From IMG/VR virus record IMGVR_UViG_3300049793_000366, positions 248,001-312,000 of that record: a DNA stretch of 64,000 bases; one strand, given 5' to 3'. The position numbers were made by a program, and so were the translations under genes. The notes beneath the pieces were generated by a model that saw only the letters and a program-made list of their open reading frames with translations, ran no database searches and was not told the origin of the DNA. Below are positions 1 to 32,234 of this stretch, piece after piece (the first letter of the stretch is position 1; the number at the start of each line of letters is the position of its first letter).

Positions 1-812
1 GATTGATGTGCCTCATCACAAGCTACTGTATGAAACTGTTTAAAGAATTCTTTTGGCCATTTCTCTAATGATTGATAGCATCCAATATAAATATTAGGAT
101 CACTAACGCCAGAATATTTACGTGGCTTATCAGACATTATCTCTTCTATCCTAAGGTCACATACTGGATATTTACTATCGTTTATTATAGCGTCTATTTT
201 AGAGTCTCTAACGGCTTGCATATTATTCTCACCATAATTGTATTCCATAATATTATCATAGAATTGTGTAACAAGTGATATAGACGGAACAATAATTAAT
301 ATTTTAGCATTTGGGTCAATCTTATGAAGTGTGTATAGAATAACAATTGATATTACTAATGATTTACCACCTGATGTAGCAACCTCAGCCATACAGTACC
401 TATTCTTCATTATCTTATAGGCAGTTTCTATCTGGTAGTCATATGGTGTGAATGACTTCCACTCATTTGTTTTCTTATCTAAAACTTTGTGATTTTTGAA
501 AAATTCAGTACAAAATTCTTGCACTGATTCGAGTGTGATATCTCTATTAAGCGGGAAGTCTTTTTTATTTTCAATGTCGAATTTAACACCTATTTCCTTA
601 GCAGCTAATAAGCATTCCTTCCATAATCCGAGATTAACCTTACCGGCATCGAAGTATGTTATATTACCATCCCACACGCCCATCTTAACAGCGGGCATGA
701 ATTTCCAACCTTTGGGTTTTCTCGTCAACCAAATATCCAACTGGTGGTACTCGATTCTTGTTGCTGACGATAAGATTAATTTTTCTTTTTCTGCATCATA
801 TCTGAATATCAT
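1..812 (-). CDS. uvsW: UvsW-like SF2 DNA helicase, N-terminal part (runs off the window start)
   Basis: Not in the ORF track; translated by hand from ATG at 812: MIFRYDAEKEK...GVWDG...PYDYQ (Q motif)...ATSGGKS (Walker A)...IIVPSISLVTQ (Ia)...CDEAHQ (Walker B). Confidence 0.9.
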   Translation of the reverse strand, partial: MIFRYDAEKEKLILSSATRIEYHQLDIWLTRKPKGWKFMPAVKMGVWDGNITYFDAGKVNLGLWKECLLAAKEIGVKFDIENKKDFPLNRDITLESVQEFCTEFFKNHKVLDKKTNEWKSFTPYDYQIETAYKIMKNRYCMAEVATSGGKSLVISIVILYTLHKIDPNAKILIIVPSISLVTQFYDNIMEYNYGENNMQAVRDSKIDAIINDSKYPVCDLRIEEIMSDKPRKYSGVSDPNIYIGCYQSLEKWPKEFFKQFHTVACDEAHQ

Positions 813-4693: not shown

Positions 4694-4725
4694 CAAAGAT
4701 AATCTAATTATTGGACTTTTCCAAA
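4694..4725 (-). promoter_or_regulatory. Bacteroidota sigma-A type early promoter TTTG-N20-TATCTTTG
   Basis: Consensus -33/-7 boxes, 20 nt spacer. Confidence 0.8.
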
Positions 4726-5988
4726 TGTTTTTTCTAATCTATTATTAAATATGGACTCAATTTCGGACTTCCACTTCTTAGGAAATACAATAGAATCGTG
4801 AATTGTAAACAACTTAACATCCGGATATTTGGTCATTATTTCTTTAATTACCTCATTGAAAATAAACTGAGACTCAGCACGTTGAAGCTCGTGAGCTAAA
4901 GTACGGTGGTTCTTATTAAGATTCTTATAAGTCTTGATGAAATCGTGGATGGTTGGGAAGACTTTATGGAATAAATTATCTTCTTTTGCTTTTCTGTGGT
5001 TAGTTCCAAAGAAAACCTTGTAAATCAGAGTTTTAACTTCTTTCTTATCTTTAATACCCAAGCAATCCATCAAATGTTGATATAATAATCCTTCGTGTGT
5101 TAAAAATTTAAATAGTTCGTATTCCCTTGAGCTTATTACTAAGTTAAGCTCGTGAGCATCAATAATTTTGGTTAGAAATAACGGTTGTGAGTTTGAAATA
5201 TCTACTTCACAAACTTCTTCACCATCTATCATAAGATGCGTCTTTCTAATATATGATTTGAGTCTGGTAAAGTTTGTATGAAATCTACCATATTCATCAA
5301 AATGATAATGTATGTGTTTTTCGTGAATACAATCTATTGCATATCGGTTACTGTTATAAACATCAATATCCCTTCTTAATTTATCAACATAGTCATCAGC
5401 TTGTTCTTTATCAATTGATATGTAGAATAAATCATTTACTAATTTCTCCTGTATATGTTTCTCAATATTAGACTCAATGGTATCGTTCTCATTAGATACA
5501 TTGATTTTATATTTCTTAAGTAATGTACTATCGTAGTTTTTAAATCGCTTGCTTGTGCCTACAAATAGCTCTGGTGATAATTCAAATGTTTTACAACGTG
5601 AGCGTTGCTTACAATAATTGTGTATTAGTTTCAATACACCACTTTGATTTAGGTATTCGAGATAGTGATTATAGTCAGTGCCATATTTTTCTCTTAGAAT
5701 TTCAGATGAAAGTCTTATGGCTAATTTCTTTTCGTAGTAATATTTGAACATCAAACCACTTGTGATGTCTATTAGATATGAAACTTTTAGTCGAACTTCT
5801 TTGTCAATCTGAGCTTTCTTTTTCCTTGAGTATATACTTCGTTTTAAGAAGACATATTTCTGTGACGAAATAGATTCAAGTTGTGGTGGTAATAATTGTA
5901 ATAAGTACTTTTTGCTTTTTAATTTATTCTTTGTGTCTAAAGCATGAGCGGATGTTTTTACTGTTGGTCTTTCAAGTTCGAGTAGCAT
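4708..5988 (-). CDS. Minimal family-A polymerase-fold protein with no exonuclease domain
   Basis: GRFHT, EVDISNSQP (motif A), KTLIYKVFFG (motif B-like), LQRAES, IHDSI (motif C); start set at ATG 5988, downstream of the promoter. Confidence 0.65.
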   Translation of the reverse strand: MLLELERPTVKTSAHALDTKNKLKSKKYLLQLLPPQLESISSQKYVFLKRSIYSRKKKAQIDKEVRLKVSYLIDITSGLMFKYYYEKKLAIRLSSEILREKYGTDYNHYLEYLNQSGVLKLIHNYCKQRSRCKTFELSPELFVGTSKRFKNYDSTLLKKYKINVSNENDTIESNIEKHIQEKLVNDLFYISIDKEQADDYVDKLRRDIDVYNSNRYAIDCIHEKHIHYHFDEYGRFHTNFTRLKSYIRKTHLMIDGEEVCEVDISNSQPLFLTKIIDAHELNLVISSREYELFKFLTHEGLLYQHLMDCLGIKDKKEVKTLIYKVFFGTNHRKAKEDNLFHKVFPTIHDFIKTYKNLNKNHRTLAHELQRAESQFIFNEVIKEIMTKYPDVKLFTIHDSIVFPKKWKSEIESIFNNRLEKTFGKVQ

Positions 5989-6011
5989 TAAAATTGATAA
6001 TTCTTTTTTAG

Positions 6012-6038
6012 TTCTATGTAAAAAAGAAATCAAAGTTC
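6012..6038 (-). promoter_or_regulatory. Putative middle promoter GAAC-N16-CATAGAA
   Basis: Recurring motif. Confidence 0.6.
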
Positions 6039-6058
6039 ATACAACATCATGATATATT

Positions 6059-6250
6059 TTAACCTAATAAATCATCTATTTTAGAGTCACGTTTCATCAT
6101 TTTTTCAATCATTTGGTATTCCTTGATTAGTCTGGTTTCTTCCGCTGCATAGTCTATGTATTTGAAGTTTTTTAAATCTTCAATCATCTCCGGTGTCCAT
6201 ACTGCGTTGACTTTAAAGGTACCAACCATACCATTCTCATCGACACTCAT
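6059..6250 (-). CDS. Small protein: gp23-like major capsid fragment plus C-terminal R-tag
   Basis: KVNAVWTPEMIEDL...ID.AAE resembles the gp23-family KLKA.WT/S.ELAQDL...DAEAEL segment; ends KRDSKIDDLLG. Confidence 0.65.
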   Translation of the reverse strand: MSVDENGMVGTFKVNAVWTPEMIEDLKNFKYIDYAAEETRLIKEYQMIEKMMKRDSKIDDLLG

Positions 6251-7593
6251 TATTGTTGAAATCCTTTTTCTTCACCACCTAATTTATCATCTTCCATATC
6301 CTCCATACCCTCTTTTCCTGGTACGCCTTTTTTCTTCTTATCCTGTGGTGTTTGAAACTCTCTATATACATCTGGGTAAACATTATCCTCAGCATCTACA
6401 TCATATTTTATTTCGAAGAAATCCCCGAAATCAAGTAATCCTGATTTAGCAAGTGTTACTTCGGTGTGCTTTCTTAAAGATAAATCGATAATCTGTGATA
6501 TTTTATCAACGAATGCATTAAATAAACCAATTGTAGAATCGTTAAATACACCGATTGGTTTCTTTCTTTTTTTGTTGAATGAACCCAAAATAACTTTAAA
6601 TAAATATTCAATCTTAGGGTCTTCTATAAGTAAATCTTTTGTAACCTTATTCTTAATTAACTCTACGTTAATCTTGAATTTTTCCTTATCAAAGAAATCT
6701 GGAATAGAGAACTGAAATTCTAAAATATCATCCTTAGCATCTGACATATACATATTGAATAATTTTGAAATCAATGATATATAAGCGGTATCTCTTCTTG
6801 TTTCTTTTATCTTAACATCATCTACGTTTATAGATTGACAGTAATTCATAAAGTTCAATAAGATTAGAGAATATACTTCAACAAACTCAGTAGTGTTTGT
6901 ATCAGATATACGTCTGTATAATGGATTGAATATCTCGAATGATAAATCCTTGTCTTGTAATCTGATGATAATCTTCTCAGTATTTTGCTGAAAGTCATCC
7001 ATCAAGAAAGAATTCTTAGAATATGGGTTAAGTAGCTTATAGAAGAAAAACGCAAAGTTCTTTTCACCAAAAACATATTCTAAATCATCAGGAGATGTAT
7101 TTATGAAGTATTTTATAGCTTGTACTTGGTCTTGCCCTAAATTACCCTGAAATATAACTGGTAAGTGGTCTACATCAAATAAGCGAGAAAACTCAATAAG
7201 CTCATCAAGTGAGTAATCAAATTTGTTACCTTTACACATACCCGTCAACACTAAGCCATTTTTTGGCATACGCTGATATTGAATATTTGCTGGTTGATTA
7301 TCTGGGAAGTATTCGAATATGAACCACCATTTCTTTGGCATTAGTGATTTAACTCTATCATCAAATTTATTGAAATAGTCAAGAGCCGCATTATAGAAGT
7401 TCTGTAATGCTAGATCAATCTGATTAATTGGTTCTGACCCAAGAGATTTTGGTTTTATTCTGAACTGAGAGCCATCCCAGTTGACATATATTTTAGATCC
7501 TTGTACATCTTCATATACAATTATTTCATTCTCGAAAAGCTCATTTAAAAGCTGTTTATCACTATCGTGATTAAGGGTTATAAGTTTACTCAT
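6250..7593 (-). CDS. RNA-ligase (Rnl2)-like fold protein, catalytic Lys apparently absent
   Basis: YEDVQGS in place of EKxDG; FIFEYF, LPVIFQG, EKIIIR; late motif at 7622-7629. Confidence 0.45.
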   Translation of the reverse strand: MSKLITLNHDSDKQLLNELFENEIIVYEDVQGSKIYVNWDGSQFRIKPKSLGSEPINQIDLALQNFYNAALDYFNKFDDRVKSLMPKKWWFIFEYFPDNQPANIQYQRMPKNGLVLTGMCKGNKFDYSLDELIEFSRLFDVDHLPVIFQGNLGQDQVQAIKYFINTSPDDLEYVFGEKNFAFFFYKLLNPYSKNSFLMDDFQQNTEKIIIRLQDKDLSFEIFNPLYRRISDTNTTEFVEVYSLILLNFMNYCQSINVDDVKIKETRRDTAYISLISKLFNMYMSDAKDDILEFQFSIPDFFDKEKFKINVELIKNKVTKDLLIEDPKIEYLFKVILGSFNKKRKKPIGVFNDSTIGLFNAFVDKISQIIDLSLRKHTEVTLAKSGLLDFGDFFEIKYDVDAEDNVYPDVYREFQTPQDKKKKGVPGKEGMEDMEDDKLGGEEKGFQQ

Positions 7594-7621: not shown

Positions 7622-7665
7622 TATATATTAAATTTTGGTTTTGTTCAAACAATATTTAATATATA
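7622..7665. promoter_or_regulatory. Divergent pair of putative late promoters (AATATATA)
   Basis: AATATATA on minus at 7622-7629 and on plus at 7658-7665. Confidence 0.6.
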
Positions 7666-7669
7666 CATC

Positions 7670-8032
7670 ATGGGTAAGGAAATTAAGAAGTTTAAGGAAT
7701 ACAGTAACCTGTCATCAGACGCGGAATCTGAGACTTTTGACATGGATGGAAATAAAATTTCGGGTCCACTTGAGATAGAGTCAATAATTGACGTATTTAC
7801 TGACCCTTCTGAAATCCCAGGAGTTAGCGAATCCGCATCTGGTATTAGTTTCAATACGGATCTCTCTGTTAAAGAGGTTAAAAGAGGTGATAATATTTGG
7901 ATAACTGCTCTTTTGAGAAAACCAGGTACAACATCGTTCAATTCCCCAGCCGTACAAGGTGTTATAAAAGTTAGAGTTGTTGATATATACTACGGATTGC
8001 AATACTTAAATAAAGTAATTAATAATGGCTAA
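7670..8032 (+). CDS. Late protein with N-terminal capsid-targeting-like sequence
   Basis: Starts MGKEIKKFKEY; late motif 4 nt upstream. Confidence 0.7.
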   Translation: MGKEIKKFKEYSNLSSDAESETFDMDGNKISGPLEIESIIDVFTDPSEIPGVSESASGISFNTDLSVKEVKRGDNIWITALLRKPGTTSFNSPAVQGVIKVRVVDIYYGLQYLNKVINNG

Positions 8033-8549
8033 GAAAATACACGGTAAACAATTATTAGATAATACTATCGTGAAAACGATAAATGGTGTGACTTATTCAC
8101 ACCAAGGTATTACGTCATCTAATGACAGTAATGTTACTCTTAGTATTGTATCTGGTCAGACACATTCATTTAATCTTGGTTGGACTGGTGTATTACCAGT
8201 TAGTAGGGGTGGTTTGAGTAATTCAACATTCACTGCTTCACAGATTTTGATTATTGATTCAATGACATCATCTGTTATTAGTTCTGGTTATCTTTTTAAT
8301 GATGCTGGAACATCTGCTTTTGATGTGTGGTCAGCAAATAAGATAATTTCTTATACATCAATGATAAGTGGTTCTGGTTTATCAGCATCGTTAGCAGTTG
8401 GTAATAATGCTGGAACATATTCGATTGATATGAACCAAAATAAGATAATGAATGTAGCAACTGGTTCAAATAGATTAGACGCGACTAACTACGGTCAAAT
8501 GTATGATATGAGTGTTGAGATGTTAAAAATAATAAGCCTAAGAGTATGA
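8025..8549 (+). CDS. Virion or tail-fibre-associated protein
   Basis: Ser/Thr/Gly-rich; LPVSRGG, WSANKI and NVATG..DATNYGQ fibre motifs. Confidence 0.65.
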   Translation: MAKKIHGKQLLDNTIVKTINGVTYSHQGITSSNDSNVTLSIVSGQTHSFNLGWTGVLPVSRGGLSNSTFTASQILIIDSMTSSVISSGYLFNDAGTSAFDVWSANKIISYTSMISGSGLSASLAVGNNAGTYSIDMNQNKIMNVATGSNRLDATNYGQMYDMSVEMLKIISLRV

Positions 8550-10627
8550 TAATTTTAAATGCGACAACTAAATTATTGGAAATATCAGTCGATTCTGCAC
8601 CATCAGTAAATATTGATTGGGTATCGAATTGGATTGATATGGGTCAAGCATCTTTCGTACCGATGGCTTATAGTGGTGCTTTAGGTCCTTTGCTAACCTC
8701 TGATGTAGTAGTTCCAGCGCCAATATCCAATCATCAACATCAATTAAAATATCTATCGATATACAATTCTGATAGCACGGCTTTAACTTTTAATGTTTTC
8801 TATAATGATAATGGTACACTTAGAACTATTACTAAGATAACATTAGATTCAGGTGATACCTTAAGATATATTGATAGTGATGGATTTAGTGTTTTATTAT
8901 CAAATGGTGCTATTAAAACTGGTGTTGTTGGTCCTGCTGGTGCTACGGGTGCTGGTGCTGATTTCACAATTAATAGTTTAACATATTCAGCTCAATATTT
9001 AACATCATCTAATGATACGAATGTTAAATTAAATATAGTATCTAGTGTTGATACACATTCGTTTAATGTAACTTGGAATGGACAACTTCCTGTAAATAGA
9101 GGTGGTTCTAATAATGCTACTTTCTCTAACTTGGAATTACTTAGAATGAATTTAGCTGGGACAGCTTTTGAAAGTTCAGGATTAACATCTGGTCAGATAT
9201 CGGTAGTTGGTCATACTCATAACGCAATCGATACAATAGGATTCACATCATCTACAAGGGGTGTGTTAAGTGCTACTTTGCCTATTTTATATAGCTCATC
9301 TACTGGTATAATATCAAGTCAACAATCTACTTCAACACAGTCTGGTTATTTATCGACTACTGATTGGAACACATTTAATAACAAACAGTCATCTTTAACA
9401 TTCACTAATGGAGTGACGAATAATAGTGGAACTGTATCATTAACAACGACTGGTGCTACTGCTGGTGCGTATTCATTCGTAAATGCTACAATAGATGCAT
9501 ATGGTAGAGTAACAAATATATCAAGTAACCCTGCTTCGTCTTCAACACAGTCTGGTTATTTAACAACAACTGATTGGAACACATTTAACAACAAGCAATC
9601 AGTATTGACATTTGTGAATGGTGTGACTAATAACAGTGGAACTGTTTCATTAACAACTACTGGTGTTACACCAGGTACATATACATTTTCAACATTTGTA
9701 GTTGATACTTATGGTAGAATCTCATCAGCTTCTAATGGTTTGCAATCATCTTCAACACAATCAGGTTATTTAACAACAACTGATTGGAACACATTTAACA
9801 ACAAGCAATCAGCATTAGTATTTGTAAACGGTTTAACAAACAATGGTGGTACTGTTTCATTAACAACTACCGGAGCAACTGCTGGTTCTTATACATTCTT
9901 GAGCGCGACTATTGATGCCTATGGTAGAGTAACTGATATATTCAGCAATCCTGCTTCGTCTTCAACACAATCAGGTTATTTGACATCAACTGATTGGAAC
10001 ACATTTAACAATAAACAATCAACACTTGCTTTTCCTGATGGTGTTCAGAATGTGGGTGGTACTGTTTCGCTTACAAATACTGGTGTTACTGCTGGTACAT
10101 ATACAAATACAACTCTTACAGTAGATGCTAATGGTAGAATAACTTCTGCTTCAAATGGTTTAACGCAATCAGCATCTAATGTGATGTTCACTAATAATGA
10201 ATGGTTATCTACGGTAGTTGGTTCTGGTACAACAGCAATTGTAAACTCACTTGCTACTGATGGTAGATTATATACGAGATATACTGCGGCAAGTGGTGGT
10301 GGGCAATCTTGTACATTTATTTTTCAATCTCGTATACCAAGAGACTTTGTTGGATTCCCTTCTAATAACGTATTTATCGATTCGTATAAATCTACTGGTA
10401 CACCAACTTTCACATTTGAATTTTTGAATCCAAGTGGTGTTGTATATCAAACAACAAGTATTTTACCAGGTTCTAATACAACATGGACTAATAATAATTT
10501 TAGTTTAACTGGTACGTGGTCATCTGGTGATATAATAACATTCAGAGTTACTATATCGAGTCCATCGAATACGGCTGAACACCGAATTGATAGATTTGAA
10601 TTACAGTATAATAGTAAGATAGGGTAA
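8546..10627 (+). CDS. Tail fibre protein with 70-aa repeats
   Basis: Four copies of TQSGYLxTTDWNTFNNKQ with TGxTAGxY..T.DAYGR motifs; short collagen-like GPAGATG. Confidence 0.8.
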   Translation: MIILNATTKLLEISVDSAPSVNIDWVSNWIDMGQASFVPMAYSGALGPLLTSDVVVPAPISNHQHQLKYLSIYNSDSTALTFNVFYNDNGTLRTITKITLDSGDTLRYIDSDGFSVLLSNGAIKTGVVGPAGATGAGADFTINSLTYSAQYLTSSNDTNVKLNIVSSVDTHSFNVTWNGQLPVNRGGSNNATFSNLELLRMNLAGTAFESSGLTSGQISVVGHTHNAIDTIGFTSSTRGVLSATLPILYSSSTGIISSQQSTSTQSGYLSTTDWNTFNNKQSSLTFTNGVTNNSGTVSLTTTGATAGAYSFVNATIDAYGRVTNISSNPASSSTQSGYLTTTDWNTFNNKQSVLTFVNGVTNNSGTVSLTTTGVTPGTYTFSTFVVDTYGRISSASNGLQSSSTQSGYLTTTDWNTFNNKQSALVFVNGLTNNGGTVSLTTTGATAGSYTFLSATIDAYGRVTDIFSNPASSSTQSGYLTSTDWNTFNNKQSTLAFPDGVQNVGGTVSLTNTGVTAGTYTNTTLTVDANGRITSASNGLTQSASNVMFTNNEWLSTVVGSGTTAIVNSLATDGRLYTRYTAASGGGQSCTFIFQSRIPRDFVGFPSNNVFIDSYKSTGTPTFTFEFLNPSGVVYQTTSILPGSNTTWTNNNFSLTGTWSSGDIITFRVTISSPSNTAEHRIDRFELQYNSKIG
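9331..10150 (+). repeat. Tandem 210-bp (70-aa) coding repeat, about 4 units
   Basis: TCxGGTTATTT...TGATTGGAACACATTTAA at 9341, 9551, 9761 and 9971. Confidence 0.9.
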
Positions 10628-10648
10628 AAAATAAAAAATATATAGGAC

Positions 10649-13600
10649 ATGGCATTTTTAGGTAAGTATAAGATATATCAACCAGTTGACTTTGGAACTA
10701 CAATTGATCCAAACTATGTAATACAAACATCACTTGATAGTCAAGTATTTGATGATATTACGAGTTTGGAAAATTTTGATAATGTTATTGGTAGAATCAG
10801 TGGTACGGTTGGATATTATTCTAATATACGTAATGAGATGTCTTTGCTTATTGATAACTTTGGTGGATTCTTAGACCTTAGTACTGCTGAACAAGAAATT
10901 GTTTCAAGACATTTCTTAGTTTCTAAAGCTGATAGAGATACAATACATACAAGTGATGAACAAATAGCAAACGCAAAAAGAATACAAGCATTATTAGCAA
11001 AGGAAAATGAGGATGCTGGTTATAACTATAATGCTGTTGTATATGCTGATAGTAATTTAATAGCTGATGTTACCGATTATCAATCAATTGACTATTTATA
11101 TACACCACATTTAACTGTTGGTAGTATTTCATTTGGTGCTAGCGGCCCAACTGGTGGTTCTGATTTATATGCTACAATTTCAACTAAGGTTGATACAACT
11201 GATAATAGACTACACTACCAGAATGTTCTTAAAGTTAAGAAAAATCCTGGTGTTGGTGAATATTCAAGTATTAATGCCGCTTTAGCTGCTATTACTGATA
11301 ATAGTACAACTAATAGATATAGTATTACTGTTTATCCAGGTAAATATACTGAGAGTACAATTTATACTAAGCCTTTCGTTGAGATATCGGGTATAGCTAA
11401 CTTCAACACAATAATTGAAGTTAATGATTATACTAAAGATGTTGTTGTGTTATGTCCTAATACATCATTTAATAATTTCTTATTAACGGGAGCAACAGCA
11501 ACAGGAGCAGCTGCTTTCGCGGTAACTGCTTCTTTTGGACCTGGTGCTTCTTGTGAAATTAATAACATATCATTCCTAACAGTTAATACTATTTTTAGGT
11601 CTGCTCTTAGTGTTGGTCAATTTGCAATAGTTGGATTTTTAAATTCTAATGTTTCAACGTTTTCTAATGTTAAGAAAGGTATTGATATAAGTGGTGCTGG
11701 TTATACAATATTATCGTGGGCTAACTCTAAGAACAGCGTTGTTTCAACTATTAGTGATTTTGCTGAATTGAGAGGTTCTAATAATCGATTAATATTTACT
11801 GATTTTGGTTTGATTACACAACCTGCTTTGGGTGGTACAATGTCCAATTTCGTAAGAATATATGATGGTGCTACTATTGACTTAGTTGGTGTTTCTATTG
11901 ATGGTGCTGGGACAGCACTTAATAACGAAAATACTGGTTCTGGTGTTAACATACGTGCGAATGGATTTAATATTATTAATTCATTAACGAGTGATGTTGT
12001 AATTGGTCATCCATCTACAGTTGGTAACTTACAGGGTATTGTTGATTCATCAAAAGTTACAATAGATTCTACTAATTTTAGATTATCATATTCAGAACCA
12101 ACTGGTGGTTTCGTAATTACAGGTGATTTCACACTTGGTCAATCACAAGGTACGTTGGTTGAAATGGGTGCTATCATCGAAAGAGCATTAACTATGGGTG
12201 TTTATGAAGGTGGTGATATAGCTACTGTTTCAGCAAGTGGTTTTACCGTTTCGGTTGAAGCTGGTTTTGGTTACCTATGTGATGATGGTGAAGCAGACCA
12301 TACTATTAGAAAGATTTTCTGGGATAATGATTCAATTGCGGTATCACCATATACTAGTGAGTTCTTATATTACAACTCAAGCGGTACTTTATTAAAGTCA
12401 GCAACTAGATTAGAGTCTCAACATTATATATTCTTAGGTAGAACTGTTACTGATAGTAGTTCTATTGTTTCAATCATACCATCTAAATTATATGGTATGC
12501 ATTATAGCAATGATGTTGATACATTATTGAGAGATGGTTTTGGTTCTATTTATAAGAGTGGTTCATTGGTAAGTGAAGGAACATCTGATAGAACATTAGA
12601 TGTTACAAGTGGTGTTTATTACAATACCCAATATAAATACACACCTTCTGGTGGACTTCCAATTACATTTGATGCGTTTTATAAAAATGGTAGTGGTGGA
12701 TTTACAATAAGTCGTAATCAACAAGTATTACCTAATAGTACATATGATAATGGTTCGGGTACTTTAGTAAGTGCTACTGCTGGATATTATATGAAGTTCG
12801 CACTATACGTAGTTGGTGATGGTGCCAATGAAAAATATTTCATAGTACACCCACAAGAACAACATCTTACCCAGTTAGCAGCGGAACAAGGTAGTATTCC
12901 AATTGCTCCTTCATATTTTGATGCAAGTATTACATTGATAGCGAGTATCGTTGTTCAACAAGGTAATAGTAGCATAGTTAGTATATTTGATAATAGACCA
13001 ACATTATCATTTAAGGCAGAAAGTGTAACAGCATTATCTACACATGGTAACTTAGCTGGTCTATTAGAAGATGACCATCCTCAATATTTATTAGGTAATG
13101 GTACAAGAGCAATGAGTGGTAACTTAAACTTAGGTAACAATAATATTACCAATGTTGCTAATATAAATGGTATTAGTATTGCTACACACTCAAGTAGACA
13201 TTTACCAAATGGTGCTGACCCTCTTACAACTGGTACACCATCTACGGTTGGTACATCAAATCAAGAAGGTATTGGTAATGCTTTCTCAAGACAAGACCAC
13301 GTACACGCACATGGTTTTCAGACAAATGAATTACATCATGCCTTATCAACAACAGTATCACATGGTTTCATGTCATCTGTTGATAAGTATAAACTGGACT
13401 ATATACCAGGCAGTAGTGCAAGCTATTTCTCAGAACCTTTATATGTTAATGGTTTAACGGTTTCTGTTTTTCAAGCTACATCAACTCAATCTGGATATCT
13501 ATCTACGACTGACTGGAATACATTTAATAATAAGCAATCAACATTAACATTTACGAATGGTTTAACAACATCGTCTGGTACTATATCGTTAACGACTACT

Positions 13601-16231
13601 GGTGTGTCATCTGGTAGCTATACATTCTCTAATGTGACTGTTGACCAATATGGTAGACTTACTTCTGTTTCTAATGGTAGTCAAGCTACATCAACTCAGT
13701 CTGGATATTTATCTACGACTGACTGGAATACATTTAATAATAAATTAGGTACATCACTTACTTCATCTTATATACTTGTTGGTAACGGTTCTAATGTTGC
13801 TGTTGGTGCTACTGTAAGTGGTGATGCTACATTATCAAACACTGGTGTATTGACATTAAATAGTTCTGTTGTGAATGATAGTAAAATAGCATCACATACA
13901 TCTACTAAGATTACAATTACTAATAAGAGTCAATTAAATACAAGTGTTGTATATTCTGACCAAGGAAATACATTTAGTGTTGCTAAACAATCTTTCCAAT
14001 CAGATGGTACTTATGCTCCAATTAAACTTGGTGGTTTAGCATCTGACCCATCTTCATTAGAGGCTGGTGACTTTTGGTATAACTCAGCAGATCCTTCACT
14101 TAAGTTTAGAACTGGTAGTAATACTACACGCATTGTTGTTGATACCAGATTATCACAAACATTGTATAATAAGACTCTTGAATCACCAATGATTGCTACT
14201 ATTAGTAATGGTGGTGGTAGTATATCTGTACCATCTATATCAGTAATTGATACAATGGTTCTTAGAAATACTGCGGAGACATTGACAAATAAAACGTTAA
14301 CTGGTCCAACTATATCTTATATTTATAATACCGGAACAGTAACATTACCGACATCGACTGATACATTAGTTGGTAGAAATACAACAGATACATTGACAAA
14401 CAAAACGTTAACTGGTCCGACTATATCTACTATTTATAATACCGGAACATTGACACTTCCTACCACAACAGATACGTTAGTTGGTAGAGCTACTAGTGAT
14501 GTATTAACAAATAAGACAATTAGTGCTTCTGGTAATACAATCAGTGATGCTTCAATAGCAACTGGTGATTTATTGAAATCAAACGGTTCTAAATTCGTTA
14601 GATTTGGAATGGGTTCACCTTTACAAGTATTACGTGTTAATGCTGGTGGTACTGATTTAGAATATGCTAATCCATCTGCTGGTTCCGGAACTGTTACGAG
14701 TGTTGGTATGACAACATCGGGTGTCTTATACAACGTTAATACAACAATAACAACAAGTGGTACTTTCTCACTGACCTTATTAACACAAAATGCTAATTTA
14801 ATATTTGCTGGTCCATCTACTGGTGGTGCTACTACTCCATCATTTAGGTCATTGGTTACGGCTGATATGCCATCAACTGTTGTATTAAATAATCAATCAA
14901 ATACAATAACAAACACTGCTAATACATCAGTATTATCATTGGTTAGTAGTAACGCTTCATTCACGGGTGACGCATTAACTGTAAATGTTAGTGGTAACTC
15001 TGTATCACCATATAACCTATTTAAATTAACATCTACTTTATCTGGAACAAGTACTGATAAGTTAGTTGTTAGTAAAGAGGGTATGTTGAGAGTTCATGTT
15101 GGTACTGCTTCAATGATAACGGCACCAACATATTCTATTGCTCACTTTGTATCAAACATTGGTGCGAGCGCGAGCGTAATTGTCACTGATACGTATGGTA
15201 CTATTGGTGCTGGATATATGGGTCGTAGAGCAAGAGGTACATCTGATGCTCCAACAGCAGTTCAAACAAATGACATATTGACATCATTTATTGGTAGAGG
15301 TTATGGTGCTACTAATATGAATACATCAGATGGTTATATTAGGATTGTGGCAAGTCAGAACTTTACCGACACAGCACATGGTACTTATATTTCCTTCTAC
15401 ACAACTGGTACATCCAGTATTGTTGCTTCTGAGAAAATGAGAATAGGAGATGATGGTACTATCACATTAACAACTGCTCTACCTATTACGTCTGGTGGTA
15501 CTGGTCAGATAACACCGAATGATGCATTAAATGCTTTATTCCTATCTGCTACTGCCTCTGGTACAGATACATACACAGTTACATTAACTGGTATTACATC
15601 CATAACAACTGGTACAATTATTAGAATTGGCTTTACAAATGCCAATACAAGTACTGCTACACTTAATGTTAACTCATTGGGTGCAATAGCCATTGTAAAA
15701 GAAGGTGGTATAGCATTGAGAGCATCTGACATTGGTCCTGGTTCAATACATCACTTGATGTACGATGGTGTAAGCTGGACTATTGTGGCATCAAGTATGA
15801 CTCTGAAGTCTATTGTATTCTTCTCACCATCACAGGTTACTTCTGGTACAGCATTCACGCTTACTTTAGTTTCTAATGATAGAGTTGTTAGAACTTTATC
15901 TGGGTCTAACGTAACCAACACATCATATACTGAGATTGCTTTACCAGCAGATTTCATATCGTTTCCAACAGGAGCTTATAGAGTTGATTCGAATAGGTCT
16001 GGTAACGGTACTCTTACGGTTACTATTGGTAAAGGTGGAGTAGCAGATGCTACGATGAATGCATTAAGCTTAGTTGCTACTGCTACCAACTCAACTTGGG
16101 AGACCAAAAGTGGTACACCAACTAGTTCATATACTGCTGGTGATAGATTGTTAATTACTATGACTACAACAACTTCTGGTAACACAACAACGGCTGTTGG
16201 TAACGTAATACTTCAATATTATGGTAGATAA
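10649..16231 (+). CDS. Large tail fibre / tail spike protein (1860 aa)
   Basis: YSSINAALAAI..I.VYPGKY.E beta-helix cap, DDHPQY, RQDHVH, TLTNKTL repeats, two 70-aa repeats; AATATATA at 10637-10644. Confidence 0.8.
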   Translation: MAFLGKYKIYQPVDFGTTIDPNYVIQTSLDSQVFDDITSLENFDNVIGRISGTVGYYSNIRNEMSLLIDNFGGFLDLSTAEQEIVSRHFLVSKADRDTIHTSDEQIANAKRIQALLAKENEDAGYNYNAVVYADSNLIADVTDYQSIDYLYTPHLTVGSISFGASGPTGGSDLYATISTKVDTTDNRLHYQNVLKVKKNPGVGEYSSINAALAAITDNSTTNRYSITVYPGKYTESTIYTKPFVEISGIANFNTIIEVNDYTKDVVVLCPNTSFNNFLLTGATATGAAAFAVTASFGPGASCEINNISFLTVNTIFRSALSVGQFAIVGFLNSNVSTFSNVKKGIDISGAGYTILSWANSKNSVVSTISDFAELRGSNNRLIFTDFGLITQPALGGTMSNFVRIYDGATIDLVGVSIDGAGTALNNENTGSGVNIRANGFNIINSLTSDVVIGHPSTVGNLQGIVDSSKVTIDSTNFRLSYSEPTGGFVITGDFTLGQSQGTLVEMGAIIERALTMGVYEGGDIATVSASGFTVSVEAGFGYLCDDGEADHTIRKIFWDNDSIAVSPYTSEFLYYNSSGTLLKSATRLESQHYIFLGRTVTDSSSIVSIIPSKLYGMHYSNDVDTLLRDGFGSIYKSGSLVSEGTSDRTLDVTSGVYYNTQYKYTPSGGLPITFDAFYKNGSGGFTISRNQQVLPNSTYDNGSGTLVSATAGYYMKFALYVVGDGANEKYFIVHPQEQHLTQLAAEQGSIPIAPSYFDASITLIASIVVQQGNSSIVSIFDNRPTLSFKAESVTALSTHGNLAGLLEDDHPQYLLGNGTRAMSGNLNLGNNNITNVANINGISIATHSSRHLPNGADPLTTGTPSTVGTSNQEGIGNAFSRQDHVHAHGFQTNELHHALSTTVSHGFMSSVDKYKLDYIPGSSASYFSEPLYVNGLTVSVFQATSTQSGYLSTTDWNTFNNKQSTLTFTNGLTTSSGTISLTTTGVSSGSYTFSNVTVDQYGRLTSVSNGSQATSTQSGYLSTTDWNTFNNKLGTSLTSSYILVGNGSNVAVGATVSGDATLSNTGVLTLNSSVVNDSKIASHTSTKITITNKSQLNTSVVYSDQGNTFSVAKQSFQSDGTYAPIKLGGLASDPSSLEAGDFWYNSADPSLKFRTGSNTTRIVVDTRLSQTLYNKTLESPMIATISNGGGSISVPSISVIDTMVLRNTAETLTNKTLTGPTISYIYNTGTVTLPTSTDTLVGRNTTDTLTNKTLTGPTISTIYNTGTLTLPTTTDTLVGRATSDVLTNKTISASGNTISDASIATGDLLKSNGSKFVRFGMGSPLQVLRVNAGGTDLEYANPSAGSGTVTSVGMTTSGVLYNVNTTITTSGTFSLTLLTQNANLIFAGPSTGGATTPSFRSLVTADMPSTVVLNNQSNTITNTANTSVLSLVSSNASFTGDALTVNVSGNSVSPYNLFKLTSTLSGTSTDKLVVSKEGMLRVHVGTASMITAPTYSIAHFVSNIGASASVIVTDTYGTIGAGYMGRRARGTSDAPTAVQTNDILTSFIGRGYGATNMNTSDGYIRIVASQNFTDTAHGTYISFYTTGTSSIVASEKMRIGDDGTITLTTALPITSGGTGQITPNDALNALFLSATASGTDTYTVTLTGITSITTGTIIRIGFTNANTSTATLNVNSLGAIAIVKEGGIALRASDIGPGSIHHLMYDGVSWTIVASSMTLKSIVFFSPSQVTSGTAFTLTLVSNDRVVRTLSGSNVTNTSYTEIALPADFISFPTGAYRVDSNRSGNGTLTVTIGKGGVADATMNALSLVATATNSTWETKSGTPTSSYTAGDRLLITMTTTTSGNTTTAVGNVILQYYGR
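13471..13745 (+). repeat. Two further copies of the 210-bp repeat unit
   Basis: TCAAGCTACATCAACTCA..CTGGATAT at 13471 and 13681. Confidence 0.85.
14270..14520 (+). repeat. 111-bp (37-aa) TLTNKTLTGPTI coding repeat
   Basis: ATTGACAAAyAAAACGTTAACTGGTCC at 14281 and 14392, plus a degenerate third copy. Confidence 0.8.
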
Positions 16232-23116: not shown

Positions 23117-23314
23117 TTATTCTTCTTTTAATAATTCGTCTATTTTAGTTTCTCTGTTTGACATTTTAATTCTGCTTATCAATTCATCAGATGTACTATT
23201 TAGATATTCTGTATATGAGATGCTTTTATCCAACTCTTTTGCTATATACTCAGAATAGTCAATTTGTGCATTTAATGCTTCCATAACATATTCTTGGTAG
23301 CTAATTGTGTTCAT
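23117..23314 (-). CDS. Small protein with 14-aa YxEY repeats and C-terminal R-tag (NRETKIDELL)
   Basis: ISYQEYV / IDYSEYI / ISYTEYL. Confidence 0.7.
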   Translation of the reverse strand: MNTISYQEYVMEALNAQIDYSEYIAKELDKSISYTEYLNSTSDELISRIKMSNRETKIDELLKEE

Positions 23315-29913: not shown

Positions 29914-30390
29914 ATGATTAATTTTTTAAAAATGTTGAAGTTGATTCTCAGGTCTAAAATAAATCATTTCATATCTATTGATTCTGCTACTTACTTTAAG
30001 TGGCGTTATTTGATACAGATATTAATAAGACTAAATAAGAACTACGTAGCGTGTGAGGTATTCAGAACGCGATACAAGGGACTAAGGAATATTGTGATTA
30101 TTGGTTTAAAGTGGAATGGTAAGAATGTAAAGAGAAGAACAAATGGGTACGCAAAGCAGTGGATATTAAGACATAAGAAGTATAACTGCCCTTATTGTGA
30201 ACAAAAGCTAACACCAGTTAATGCTACTAGTGACCATATTGTACCAATATCAGTTGGTGGTAATAATTGTCAAGTAAATATAATAGTTTGTTGTAAAGAT
30301 TGTAATGGTGAGAGAGGTGATAGAGAATTCTATTCCTACTTAAGATATAAGAATAAAAAATATGCGAATATTAAATTCCCATTTTTATAA
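29914..30390 (+). CDS. HNH endonuclease
   Basis: CPYC...DHIVP.S.GG.N...N...CKDCN. Confidence 0.9.
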   Translation: MINFLKMLKLILRSKINHFISIDSATYFKWRYLIQILIRLNKNYVACEVFRTRYKGLRNIVIIGLKWNGKNVKRRTNGYAKQWILRHKKYNCPYCEQKLTPVNATSDHIVPISVGGNNCQVNIIVCCKDCNGERGDREFYSYLRYKNKKYANIKFPFL

Positions 30391-31087
30391 GTGCTAACTC
30401 TCTTGATACGCTTTTCATCTCATTATATTGCTCTTCGTTTACGATGACACTAAGCTCTTTCAATTTACCAACTTCGTGTAGATTGTAACCACCTCTTATT
30501 TCAACCTTGTCATCCGTTACTGATGCGTCAACAACTGATAATTCAAGTATTGATGATTTTTTACCGAATAAAATTCGAGTATCGAAATAATTTATATATG
30601 GGTCAACATAGAGTGGTATATTATTCCATCTACCGACTACATCTATTATACCAGCACTACCATTTCTAATTCTTGCATCTGGTGTGTAATACATTGAATC
30701 TTGTAGATATGAACCAATTTGTGCATTTGTTATAATAAAATCAGCTTCTCTGGTTTCATACGCTAACCTTATATCTAAATCTCTAAGTATATCTTTATAT
30801 TCAAATGATATAACGCCATTTATATGACTAAATACAAATCCTGCTTTTTCAGCACTGTCATAAATTGTTTGACATAGTTTCCTTTGAATTTGTGTGATGT
30901 ATTGTTCTATTATAGCAGTAGTAAATCGTCCTTCACCAACTGAATCGAATGCTGGGTCGTTTCTATTTATAGCTATGCTAATACCAATCTCTTCTGATAG
31001 TGTATTTACTTTTGGTGTAGACCAATTAAATATTTCTATTATCTTTAACTTGTTTATTAAATTTGCTGTTATATTTTCTTTTAGCAT
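30371..31087 (-). CDS. Truncated gp23-like major capsid paralog with degenerate R-tag (start uncertain)
   Basis: ADFIITNAQIGSYL...VGRWNNIPLYVDPY...ILFGKK resembles the gp23 C-terminal half; ends SRELALIKMGI. Confidence 0.6.
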   Translation of the reverse strand: MLKENITANLINKLKIIEIFNWSTPKVNTLSEEIGISIAINRNDPAFDSVGEGRFTTAIIEQYITQIQRKLCQTIYDSAEKAGFVFSHINGVISFEYKDILRDLDIRLAYETREADFIITNAQIGSYLQDSMYYTPDARIRNGSAGIIDVVGRWNNIPLYVDPYINYFDTRILFGKKSSILELSVVDASVTDDKVEIRGGYNLHEVGKLKELSVIVNEEQYNEMKSVSRELALIKMGI

Positions 31088-32234
31088 CCGGATTGTACTC
31101 TTTTTTTTGCTTAGGGATCCACACCGCATCGTATTGGTCTCTAGAGAAAAACTTTGGTAAGTCTAACTTCTTATATGGGTCACCACCTGTAAGCTGTGCT
31201 AACTTATTTAAATCTTTTATAGCTGATATCCTTTGTAAGTAAGTAAATGGGTCTGATGGCTTTTTCTTCTCTATTAAATTATCAAACAATTTCTTCCAAA
31301 GAAATACAGAGAAGCCTTCTTTTAATTTCATTGCTGAGTTCTTATGTCCTGTACCATCATTATCAAAGAAATATTGCATATCGAGATTGGCTTCTATGAA
31401 TCTCATGTCAGTATTAACACCAACAACACCAATAGAATTAGGATAGAACAATGAGTCGAGATATCCTTCGAATACTGTTACTTTTTCCATAACATCGATA
31501 TTTAAAATACCAAAATAATAAGATAGCTTATTATATAGTACCAATTCGTTTAAGTCAAAGTCTGCTAATTTTTCCTCACCATATAACCATTTGTATAAAC
31601 TCTCATAATTATAGATTTTGAAAAATCTGGCTCTACCATCTTTCATATTTCTAATCTGCATCCCTAATACTTTACCACCTCTTCTATTCAGAAGACATAT
31701 AATACCTTCTTTTGATTCAGCATTTCTCCAATAGTTACCTTCATAAATATTACTAATTACATCTTCTGGTATACCTCGTTTTGTAACCAGGTAGTGATAT
31801 GTTGGTGAACCTTTTTCTACTGGTTTAAAATCTGTTATTGGTGTTTCGTATGTATTGAATAGCTTAGTCAATTCTTCCAAAGAAAGAAGTTTACTCATCT
31901 GTGTCTCAACCGCATTGTCCTCGAAGTCTGAATAAGTTACATTACTTGCTATGTGTTCTATGATTTCCAATTTAACACCAGGGTCCAATTGTTGATTGAA
32001 ATCTCGACACATCTTATCAAACGATGTTCTGTGGTCACAGTTAAAGCAAACGAATATTAATTTATTCCACCATATATTTCCTCTCTTGGCATTTCGGTCA
32101 GTAGAAGAGTCACCACAATATGGACAAGCAAAATTCATCCTATCGTGGTAGTCATATATACGTCTCTTCTCAACCAATTTAAATTGGGTGTTAAGTATGT
32201 CTTGAAGACTATTTTTTATATATGATTTGTCCAT
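31026..32234 (-). CDS. gp61: DNA primase (gp61-like)
   Basis: CPYCGDS...CFNC zinc domain; Toprim FEGYLDS, FFDND. Confidence 0.9.
   Translation of the reverse strand: MDKSYIKNSLQDILNTQFKLVEKRRIYDYHDRMNFACPYCGDSSTDRNAKRGNIWWNKLIFVCFNCDHRTSFDKMCRDFNQQLDPGVKLEIIEHIASNVTYSDFEDNAVETQMSKLLSLEELTKLFNTYETPITDFKPVEKGSPTYHYLVTKRGIPEDVISNIYEGNYWRNAESKEGIICLLNRRGGKVLGMQIRNMKDGRARFFKIYNYESLYKWLYGEEKLADFDLNELVLYNKLSYYFGILNIDVMEKVTVFEGYLDSLFYPNSIGVVGVNTDMRFIEANLDMQYFFDNDGTGHKNSAMKLKEGFSVFLWKKLFDNLIEKKKPSDPFTYLQRISAIKDLNKLAQLTGGDPYKKLDLPKFFSRDQYDAVWIPKQKKEYNPDAKRKYNSKFNKQVKDNRNI

Follow-up and report, generated by a model that had tools for sequence, protein, structure and literature searches.

The minus-strand open reading frame (ORF) at 6059–6250 of the window, by which we mean the whole 64,000-nucleotide stretch of viral DNA analysed here, is a genuine conserved gene whose product reproduces, as a separate protein, a single segment of the T4-type (Gp23, HK97-fold) major capsid protein. 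This mini-protein is a derivative of the Gp23 family and no capsid subunit; by homology it derives from a known family, and as a stand-alone tagged fragment it is new. The family that it represents is large and previously unnamed, its members measure 50–75 aa, and it has no dedicated entry in Pfam or in PHROGs. Literature searches for such small capsid-segment proteins, or for the C-terminal tag that accompanies them, found no description. Together with the other tagged fragments encoded by this phage, the mini-protein points to an undescribed class of head-assembly helpers.

The phage and its head genes

The window comprises bases 248001–312000 of a virus record of 507,910 bp and 33% G+C, and a search of sequencing runs found its sequence in one soil-metagenome DNA run and in no RNA run. 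A protein database places the proteins of the window on a contig of 711,805 bp, and the 507,910-bp record may have been cut down from a larger genome. The record carries a provirus label. At the DNA level the closest public genomes are those of uncultured huge phages of 634–735 kb, and the window may come from a phage of about 0.7 Mb, like these relatives, rather than from an integrated element. An alternative genetic code was considered for the phage and rejected, table 11 already giving about 92% coding.

The phage has a T4-type head module that consists of a Gp23-family capsid protein, a T4-type portal and, encoded between them, a fusion of protease and scaffold. The major capsid protein (558 aa; genome 95750–97426) matches PF07068 with 92 bits, and the portal gene lies just upstream of the capsid gene. 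The fusion (757 aa; genome 93393–95666, plus strand) begins with a protease-like N-terminus, continues with about 12 tandem scaffold-type repeats of 14 residues (of the YSEYLAENLDKNIA type) and then passes into an acidic region. Compared by eye with T4 gp21, its N-terminus looks like a gp21-like protease; a search of the fusion with the PF03420 profile gave no match.

The mini-gene and its locus

The mini-gene, identified in the ORF listing, runs from an ATG start to a TAA stop that is included in the coordinates above, and encodes 63 aa. The capsid-derived segment occupies residues 9–52 of the product (6095–6226, minus strand) and is defined by BLASTP, the family HMM, hhalign and AF2. It is followed by the C-terminal tag RDSKIDDLL at residues 54–62 (6065–6091, minus strand), which is supported by a tag census and helical in the AF2 model, and then by one Gly. 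A preliminary description of this DNA had pointed to a 63-aa ORF that joins a capsid-like stretch of 35 residues to RDSKIDDLL, and both strings are indeed present at this place on the minus strand. It had also proposed that the mini-ORF is translationally coupled to the upstream ORF at 6250–7593, which encodes a 447-aa protein. Read on the minus strand, the sequence TAATG at 6248–6252 forms a stop/start overlap, in which the stop of the 447-aa ORF and the ATG of the mini-ORF have one base in common, and this bears the proposal out. The one-base overlap (a gap of −1) is repeated in most orthologous loci. A scan for sigma-70 promoters and terminators found no terminator in the mini-gene operon, and the scan was uninformative.

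Directly after the mini-gene, at a distance of 25 nt, lies a conserved ORF of 411–441 aa (4708–6033, minus strand) that has no Pfam or PHROG match. Its product contains DISNSQP and HDS motifs, which we take to recall, loosely, the palm motifs of polymerases.

Capsid homology of the mini-protein family

Taken alone, the window mini-protein has no match in Pfam (E ≤ 1) or PHROG, is not among the candidates returned by a genome scan with PF07068, and retrieves itself only in a word-based search of 5.8 billion proteins. An HMM of the clade's capsid proteins (119 clade members) scores it at −0.1 bits, while a Foldseek search of the PDB with its model and an Atlas search yielded nothing informative. 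The pairwise comparison with the phage's own capsid protein that the preliminary description had suggested gives a marginal result: BLASTP aligns residues 9–52 of the mini-protein with residues 312–357 of the capsid protein at E = 0.034, with a shuffle p of 0.039.

The relatives of the window copy were reached through the upstream gene of 440–447 aa (alignment A3), which served as the anchor for locus retrieval and led to 80 related loci. In two related genomes a small ORF stands at the same place after the homologous 440–446-aa gene, and 49 of the 80 loci have a homologue of the mini-protein within 1.5 kb of this ligase-like gene. Thirty distinct syntenic orthologues and the window copy make up alignment A4. 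A gp23 motif is plain to see in many of the orthologues, and 29 of the 31 members individually match PF07068, with a best E-value of 4.4e-15, the two exceptions including the window copy. The HMM check against gp23 thus gives no match with the window copy alone and a clear one with its family, and had the finding been judged, as the preliminary description proposed, by whether this one copy aligns with gp23 profiles, it would wrongly have been dropped.

When an HMM of the 30 orthologues, with the window copy left out, was run without any filter against all 4474 ORFs of the genome, the focal ORF came first (32.8 bits, E = 1.9e-8), followed by the capsid protein of the phage itself through residues 307–363 (18 bits, E = 7.7e-4). 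The order recurs when the A4 profile, which includes the window copy, is searched against six-frame translations of the relatives LR745206 and LR756502, each of which returns its syntenic mini-protein first and its capsid protein second. Applied to T4, the orthologue-only HMM scores residues 258–301 of gp23 at 31.8 bits and gp24 at 17.5 bits, and an hhalign comparison of the family with the clade's capsid proteins aligns 63 columns at E = 1.9e-5 and a probability of 78%. Among 1.84 billion representative proteins the A4 profile finds 1244 matches at E ≤ 1e-3. Full-length proteins lower in this ranking, at E of about 1e-9, were confirmed as Gp23 capsid proteins, and 105 of the best 149 of the 1244 matches are 80 aa or shorter; the strict tag pattern is present in 61 of these 105 small representatives. 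In the tag columns of A4, R54 is invariant and I58 nearly so, and the pattern reads R-x-x-[KS]-I-x-x-[IL]-[FL]. The PHROG matches of the mini-protein's relatives fall only in the generic 'major head protein' family.

With some 30 syntenic orthologues the capsid homology is unambiguous, and it is these that carry the gp23 capsid-segment identity put forward in the preliminary description, the evidence for it coming only from the family. By its sequence, the window ORF is the most diverged member of this large family. The lesson is a practical one: a single diverged copy searched against profiles produces a false negative, and orthologues anchored by synteny are needed. The view that the protein is too short for an HK97 subunit also holds, as its 63 aa correspond only to about positions 131–197 of a profile of 376; the full set of features of a complete HK97 subunit (an N-arm, P and A domains and a length of about 400–600 aa) is not found in it.

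The copied segment

An AF2 model of the mini-protein computed with A4 (pLDDT 86) has an extended N-terminus, a helix at residues 20–27 (PEMIEDLK) and a second helix at residues 34–62 that includes the tag. As modelled, this layout would mirror the P-domain strand, the short acidic P-domain helix and the spine helix of gp23. The capsid-derived segment takes in the extended stretch, the short helix and the first part of the long one, and has its counterparts at about residues 258–301 of T4 gp23 and about residues 307–357 of the phage's own capsid protein. In T4, capsomers touch each other near the quasi-threefold axes, where a short negative P-domain helix meets positive P-domain strands (PMC9546572). 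The T4 head-length mutations A268V, A275T, D285V and D287V/N form one cluster beside this short helix, and mutations that bypass the chaperonin fall in the spine helix (PMC9546572). All four mutated head-length positions (268, 275, 285 and 287) lie within the stretch 258–301 to which the family aligns.

The T4-like charged residues are better kept in most orthologues than in the clade's own capsid protein. This follows from the scores of the orthologue-only HMM given above (T4 gp23 over own capsid protein) and from a phmmer alignment in which K262, R264 and K267 of T4 stand opposite G, I and S in the capsid protein of this phage. In the window copy, F12 and N15 stand where T4 has R264 and K267, the positive strand residues are mostly gone, and the strand is more like that of the own capsid protein. 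Given this loss, a simple model of charge complementarity does not fit this particular copy.

The C-terminal tag

The tag follows the motif (hydrophobic)-R-[DEN]-x-K-[IL]-x-x-[IL]-[ILF] and recurs across the genome. It occurs within the last 18 residues of the products of 56 out of 736 non-redundant genes, where shuffled tails lead one to expect 0.36; the first 18 residues of the same 736 products contain no match, and only eight matches are internal. In the whole genome of LR745206 (634,780 bp) the same strict pattern marks 82 of 935 genes against an expectation of 0.55, so that about 8–9% of proteins are tagged in each of the two phages. An origin of the tag at the level of DNA was rejected: codons for the invariant Arg differ (AGA, AGG and CGN), and so does the distance to the stop. 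The mixture of Arg codons argues for selection on the peptide and not on the DNA.

The tagged proteins are small, with a median length of 100–110 aa, and the 18 that were searched for Pfam domains had none. Their N-terminal parts are mostly unrelated to each other, and in some of them these parts are hydrophobic, membrane-like segments. In LR756501, a more distant phage of 735 kb, none of 121 genes in the 100 kb sampled (1–50000 and 600001–650000) is tagged, and its genome returned no match to the mini-protein; tag and mini-protein may be confined to one sub-clade. An internal tag-like sequence, AVRDSKIDAII, is found at residue 200 of a 538-aa protein (window about 180–215, minus strand) whose ORF runs off the start of the window. 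The equivalent in LR745206 is EMRDKKIDHIL at residue 199 of a 536-aa protein, and this internal site appears to be conserved.

Other fragments of capsid and scaffold proteins

When the tagged proteins were stripped of their tags and searched against the complete proteome of each phage, they resembled no large proteins other than the capsid protein and the protease-scaffold fusion. A sister of the mini-protein, detected by BLASTP (65 aa; 23117–23314, minus strand; tag RETKIDELL), consists of about three copies of a 14-residue repeat with 45–57% identity to the repeats of the 757-aa fusion; LR745206 has an 83-aa equivalent at 460435–460686. LR745206 also encodes a 75-aa protein made up of capsid residues 494–539 and a tag, of which no homologue was found in the genome studied here. 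The fusion itself has a tag-like stretch, MSNDSKINDLF, just after its protease core. A PSSM ranks this stretch 21st of 139,605 internal sites; its Arg is missing, and since that residue is invariant in the tag we treat the stretch as a lead only.

Further pieces of the capsid protein are scattered over the genome. They include a 118-aa protein that resembles the N-arm and Gol region and has an internal tag (genome 82932–83288, minus strand), a 174-aa protein like the N-terminal propeptide of the capsid protein with a C-terminal tag (genome 447–971, minus strand), a piece resembling the pre-cleavage region (genome 144451–145347, plus strand) and one resembling the A domain (genome 199835–200626, plus strand). 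The internal tag of the 118-aa protein scores within the range of true tags, and a search for related loci with this protein returned mainly capsid genes. Within the window, residues 129–191 of a 252-aa ORF (30371–31129, minus strand) align with the C-terminal portion of the capsid protein, at E = 2.4e-8 with the clade HMM and at a probability of 95% in hhalign; this ORF overlaps the start of a 402-aa ORF at 31026–32234. The clade commonly reuses segments of its capsid protein.

Comparable ORFs are seen in other metagenomic phages, where small ORFs join a spine segment of gp23 to a segment of the N-arm (Gol region), as in L154:588–1498, L155:7742–8585 and L136:238–600. In L154 and L155 the preceding ORF contains the C-terminal strands of gp23, and in L155 it lies just after a Mom-like gene. 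Such fusions of spine and N-arm beside ORFs for the C-terminal strands indicate that gp23 derivatives restricted to the P domain are a wider phenomenon.

Proposed role and alternative explanations

The role that we put forward, tentatively, as the likeliest of several and yet as slightly less than an even bet, is that of an accessory to head assembly, a modulator or adaptor that presents the inter-capsomer contact element of the capsid protein; we infer a 'mimic' role, as the preliminary description did. In T4 the counterpart of the segment sits at the periphery of the capsomer near the quasi-threefold axes and makes the charge contacts between capsomers. A free copy could then dock on capsomer edges, or on a partner that reads the same surface, such as scaffold or core, and once docked it might cap, wedge or bridge the inter-capsomer contacts while a very large shell is being built; the tag would be its tether to a partner shared with other tagged proteins. 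As small proteins derived from scaffold repeats and from capsid segments bear the same tag, which in one of them is internal, they suggest that the phage encodes a series of adaptors, each of which joins a fragment of a head protein to the tag. We count against a role in head assembly that the mini-gene is near the ligase-like gene in only 49 of the 80 loci. A complex prediction with residues 1–400 of the ligase-like protein, the 118-aa protein and the mini-protein gave no answer (score 0.00) and counts neither way. A more ambitious version of this proposal, which we regard as speculative and on balance unlikely, is that the tag is a sorting or docking code and that the tagged capsid and scaffold fragments are trans-acting wedges or adaptors that help to set the geometry of the giant capsid. 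The C-terminal helix would in that case bring 8–9% of the proteome to a single receptor, for which the assembling prohead (its shell or its protease-scaffold core) is the most plausible candidate. The tag system may be something new altogether.

Two other readings, each of them rather improbable in our judgement, take the conservation of the capsid-like part or the spread of the tag as their starting point. The mini-protein could be an immune decoy, a free version of the best-conserved capsid motif that titrates a capsid-sensing host defence (Lit/Gol- or CapRel-like) without activating it. The Gol peptide is a stretch of T4 gp23 at about residues 93–122 that activates Lit, and the segments found as free ORFs are strongly conserved gp23 motifs, among them the Gol-region-like piece of the 118-aa protein; the better preservation of the canonical T4-like motif in the family than in the clade's capsid protein (31.8 versus 18 bits) would also suit a decoy. 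A capsid sensor, however, leaves the small scaffold-repeat protein with the same tag unexplained, the locus has no defence or anti-defence neighbours, we know of no sensor for the spine-helix segment of a capsid protein, and if the protein copied an activating epitope faithfully, one would expect the sensor to be triggered rather than blunted. The tag could alternatively mark passive cargo, sending some 56 small proteins to one and the same place, such as the interior of the prohead, from which they would be ejected, with the capsid-like part having no role in binding. Its place at the extreme C-terminus of nearly all tagged products (56 of 736 in this phage, 82 of 935 in LR745206) would agree with this, as would the nature of those products (small ORFans devoid of Pfam domains) and the high-ranking tag-like motif after the protease core of the fusion. 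That motif lacks the invariant Arg, however, and some tagged proteins have membrane-like N-terminal segments. More than 100 cluster representatives preserve the capsid-like part, with residues important to gp23 among those kept, and this is hard to understand if that part is inert.

It is improbable to a still greater degree that the mini-protein is a partner or regulator of the upstream RNA-ligase-like protein and has nothing to do with capsid assembly. The one-base overlap, here and in most orthologous loci, and the adjacency of the two genes in 49 of 80 loci could be read in this way; yet 31 of the 80 loci keep the ligase-like gene with no mini-gene nearby, and nothing ties a capsid spine segment to a ligase fold. 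We give almost no credence to the idea that the ORF is the decaying remnant of a capsid duplication, or that both the ORF and its likeness to the capsid protein arose by chance. The marginal similarity of the window copy to the own capsid protein (E and shuffle p as above) and its missing Pfam match are what such an ORF would display. The length, start, synteny and tag of the ORF are nevertheless kept across a wide clade, the orthologue-only profile recovers the window copy at the E-value of 1.9e-8 already given, the family has hundreds of members in metagenomes, and no frameshifts or stops were seen in the orthologues at the 49 loci with a match.

Comparison with known systems

Homology with T4 gp23 and gp24 (PF07068) extends over the P-domain strand, the short acidic helix and the spine helix. 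Unlike these proteins, the mini-protein has only 50–75 residues across its family and is without the A domain, insertion domain, N-arm and P-loop, and it therefore cannot be a shell subunit. It differs from gp23 further in adding a C-terminal tag and in being encoded far from the head gene cluster.

A possible analogue is CpmB of the SaPIs, which together with the scaffold of 80alpha is presented in the summary given by PMC9546572 (citing Dearborn 2017) as a case of size-redirecting, competing scaffold proteins. Like CpmB, the mini-protein would be a small helical protein that reuses a motif of a major head-assembly protein to alter capsomer assembly, and the same analogy might be drawn for the small scaffold-repeat protein at 23117–23314. 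Here, in contrast, it is a piece of the shell protein that has been copied, and the copy belongs to the phage and not to a satellite. An accessory at or near the quasi-threefold inter-capsomer contacts would also recall T4 Soc and lambda gpD, which are likewise small. Searches with Foldseek (PDB) and Atlas found no similarity of sequence or fold between the mini-protein and Soc or gpD, and these two, unlike the mini-protein, are not derived from the capsid protein and bind on the outside, after expansion.

The tag can be compared with the T4 capsid targeting sequence and with the cargo-loading peptides of encapsulins, which are also short terminal peptides borne by many unrelated small proteins. 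The T4 capsid targeting sequence differs in being N-terminal and cleaved off, and the sequences are unrelated. The T4 core proteins gp67, gp68 and gp22 are likewise small or helical head-assembly proteins of a T4-type phage, and they are internal to the head. Kinship of the mini-protein with these core proteins was rejected, the family HMM scoring gp22 at 0.7 bits and gp67 at −1.4 bits and not listing gp68.

T4 heads can change between isometric, prolate and giant forms through point mutations at three sites, of which the copied segment is one. A conserved free-standing copy of it, along with tagged scaffold fragments, provides a testable handle on the assembly of giant heads in phages of 0.5–0.7 Mb. 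If the tag is a targeting signal, a destination could be assigned to a large share of the 'dark' genes of huge phages, and the tag might be usable as a loading peptide. Should the interpretation of the tag as a sorting code prove true, it would amount to a new phage protein-targeting system and to a new way of controlling capsid size, by free copies of a contact element.

The upstream RNA-ligase-like gene and a putative late promoter motif

The gene upstream of the mini-gene (6250–7593, minus strand) encodes the 447-aa protein that we call RNA-ligase-like, a name based on Atlas, AF2 and Foldseek. The protein has no Pfam match; an Atlas feature search with it returned PF09414 clusters at 0.94–0.96. 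Its AF2 model has a pLDDT of 70, and Foldseek aligns this model with T4 Rnl2, T4 Rnl1 and Trl1 at E-values of 7.7e-5 to 1e-3 and a probability of 1.0, with a TM-score of only about 0.3. On the strength of the model, the protein would have an RNA-ligase-like nucleotidyltransferase fold. RNA ligases accept AMP on the lysine of motif I (KxxG). In our reading of the motifs, the family of the 447-aa protein has an invariant E28-D29-x-Q31-G32, in which Asp takes the position expected for that lysine. T4 Rnl1 (gp63) has a second role in tail-fibre attachment; the 447-aa gene is divergent from a fibre-like operon. In two related contigs (L018:1488–2717 and L020:3901–5130) the ligase-like gene is followed not by a mini-gene and instead by a 409-aa gene, whose product resembles, by eye, the large subunit of RuBisCO.

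A promoter-like 9-mer, TAATATATA, is located at 7622–7630 (minus strand), 37 nt ahead of the ATG with which the 447-aa gene begins, and a second copy of TAATATATA, on the plus strand, serves the divergent fibre-like operon. The motif came from an analysis of k-mer enrichment, in which the 7-mer ATATATA was 10.9-fold enriched upstream of genes; TATAG.ATA.AAAA, taken at one stage for the shared promoter, proved wrong. The form [AT]AATATATA lies upstream of 115–159 genes, mostly 10–14 or 25–35 nt before the start codon, and the promoter-like motif stands 13 nt before the ATGs at 7670, 10649 and 21098 (plus strand) and 43110 (minus strand). AATATATA itself stands upstream of 115 genes, the capsid and portal genes among them; within the window the motif precedes the 447-aa and fibre-like genes and is absent before the gene for DNA polymerase B. 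The 447-aa gene and the mini-gene would therefore fit a structural or late promoter class, in keeping with the description of 6250–7593 as a late gene. The late-type promoter motif is sparse in the regions that contain most of the tagged genes, and a specific tie of the tag to the head is therefore not obvious.

A second motif, TATCCGTATAT, occurs upstream of about 22 genes and is concentrated at 460–508 kb, where small tagged genes cluster. The fibre-like genes occupy 8025–16231 of the window (plus strand) and include one with a 693-aa product that has four near-identical repeats containing SSSTQSGYLTTTDWNTFNNKQS; the ORF that follows this gene encodes 1860 aa.
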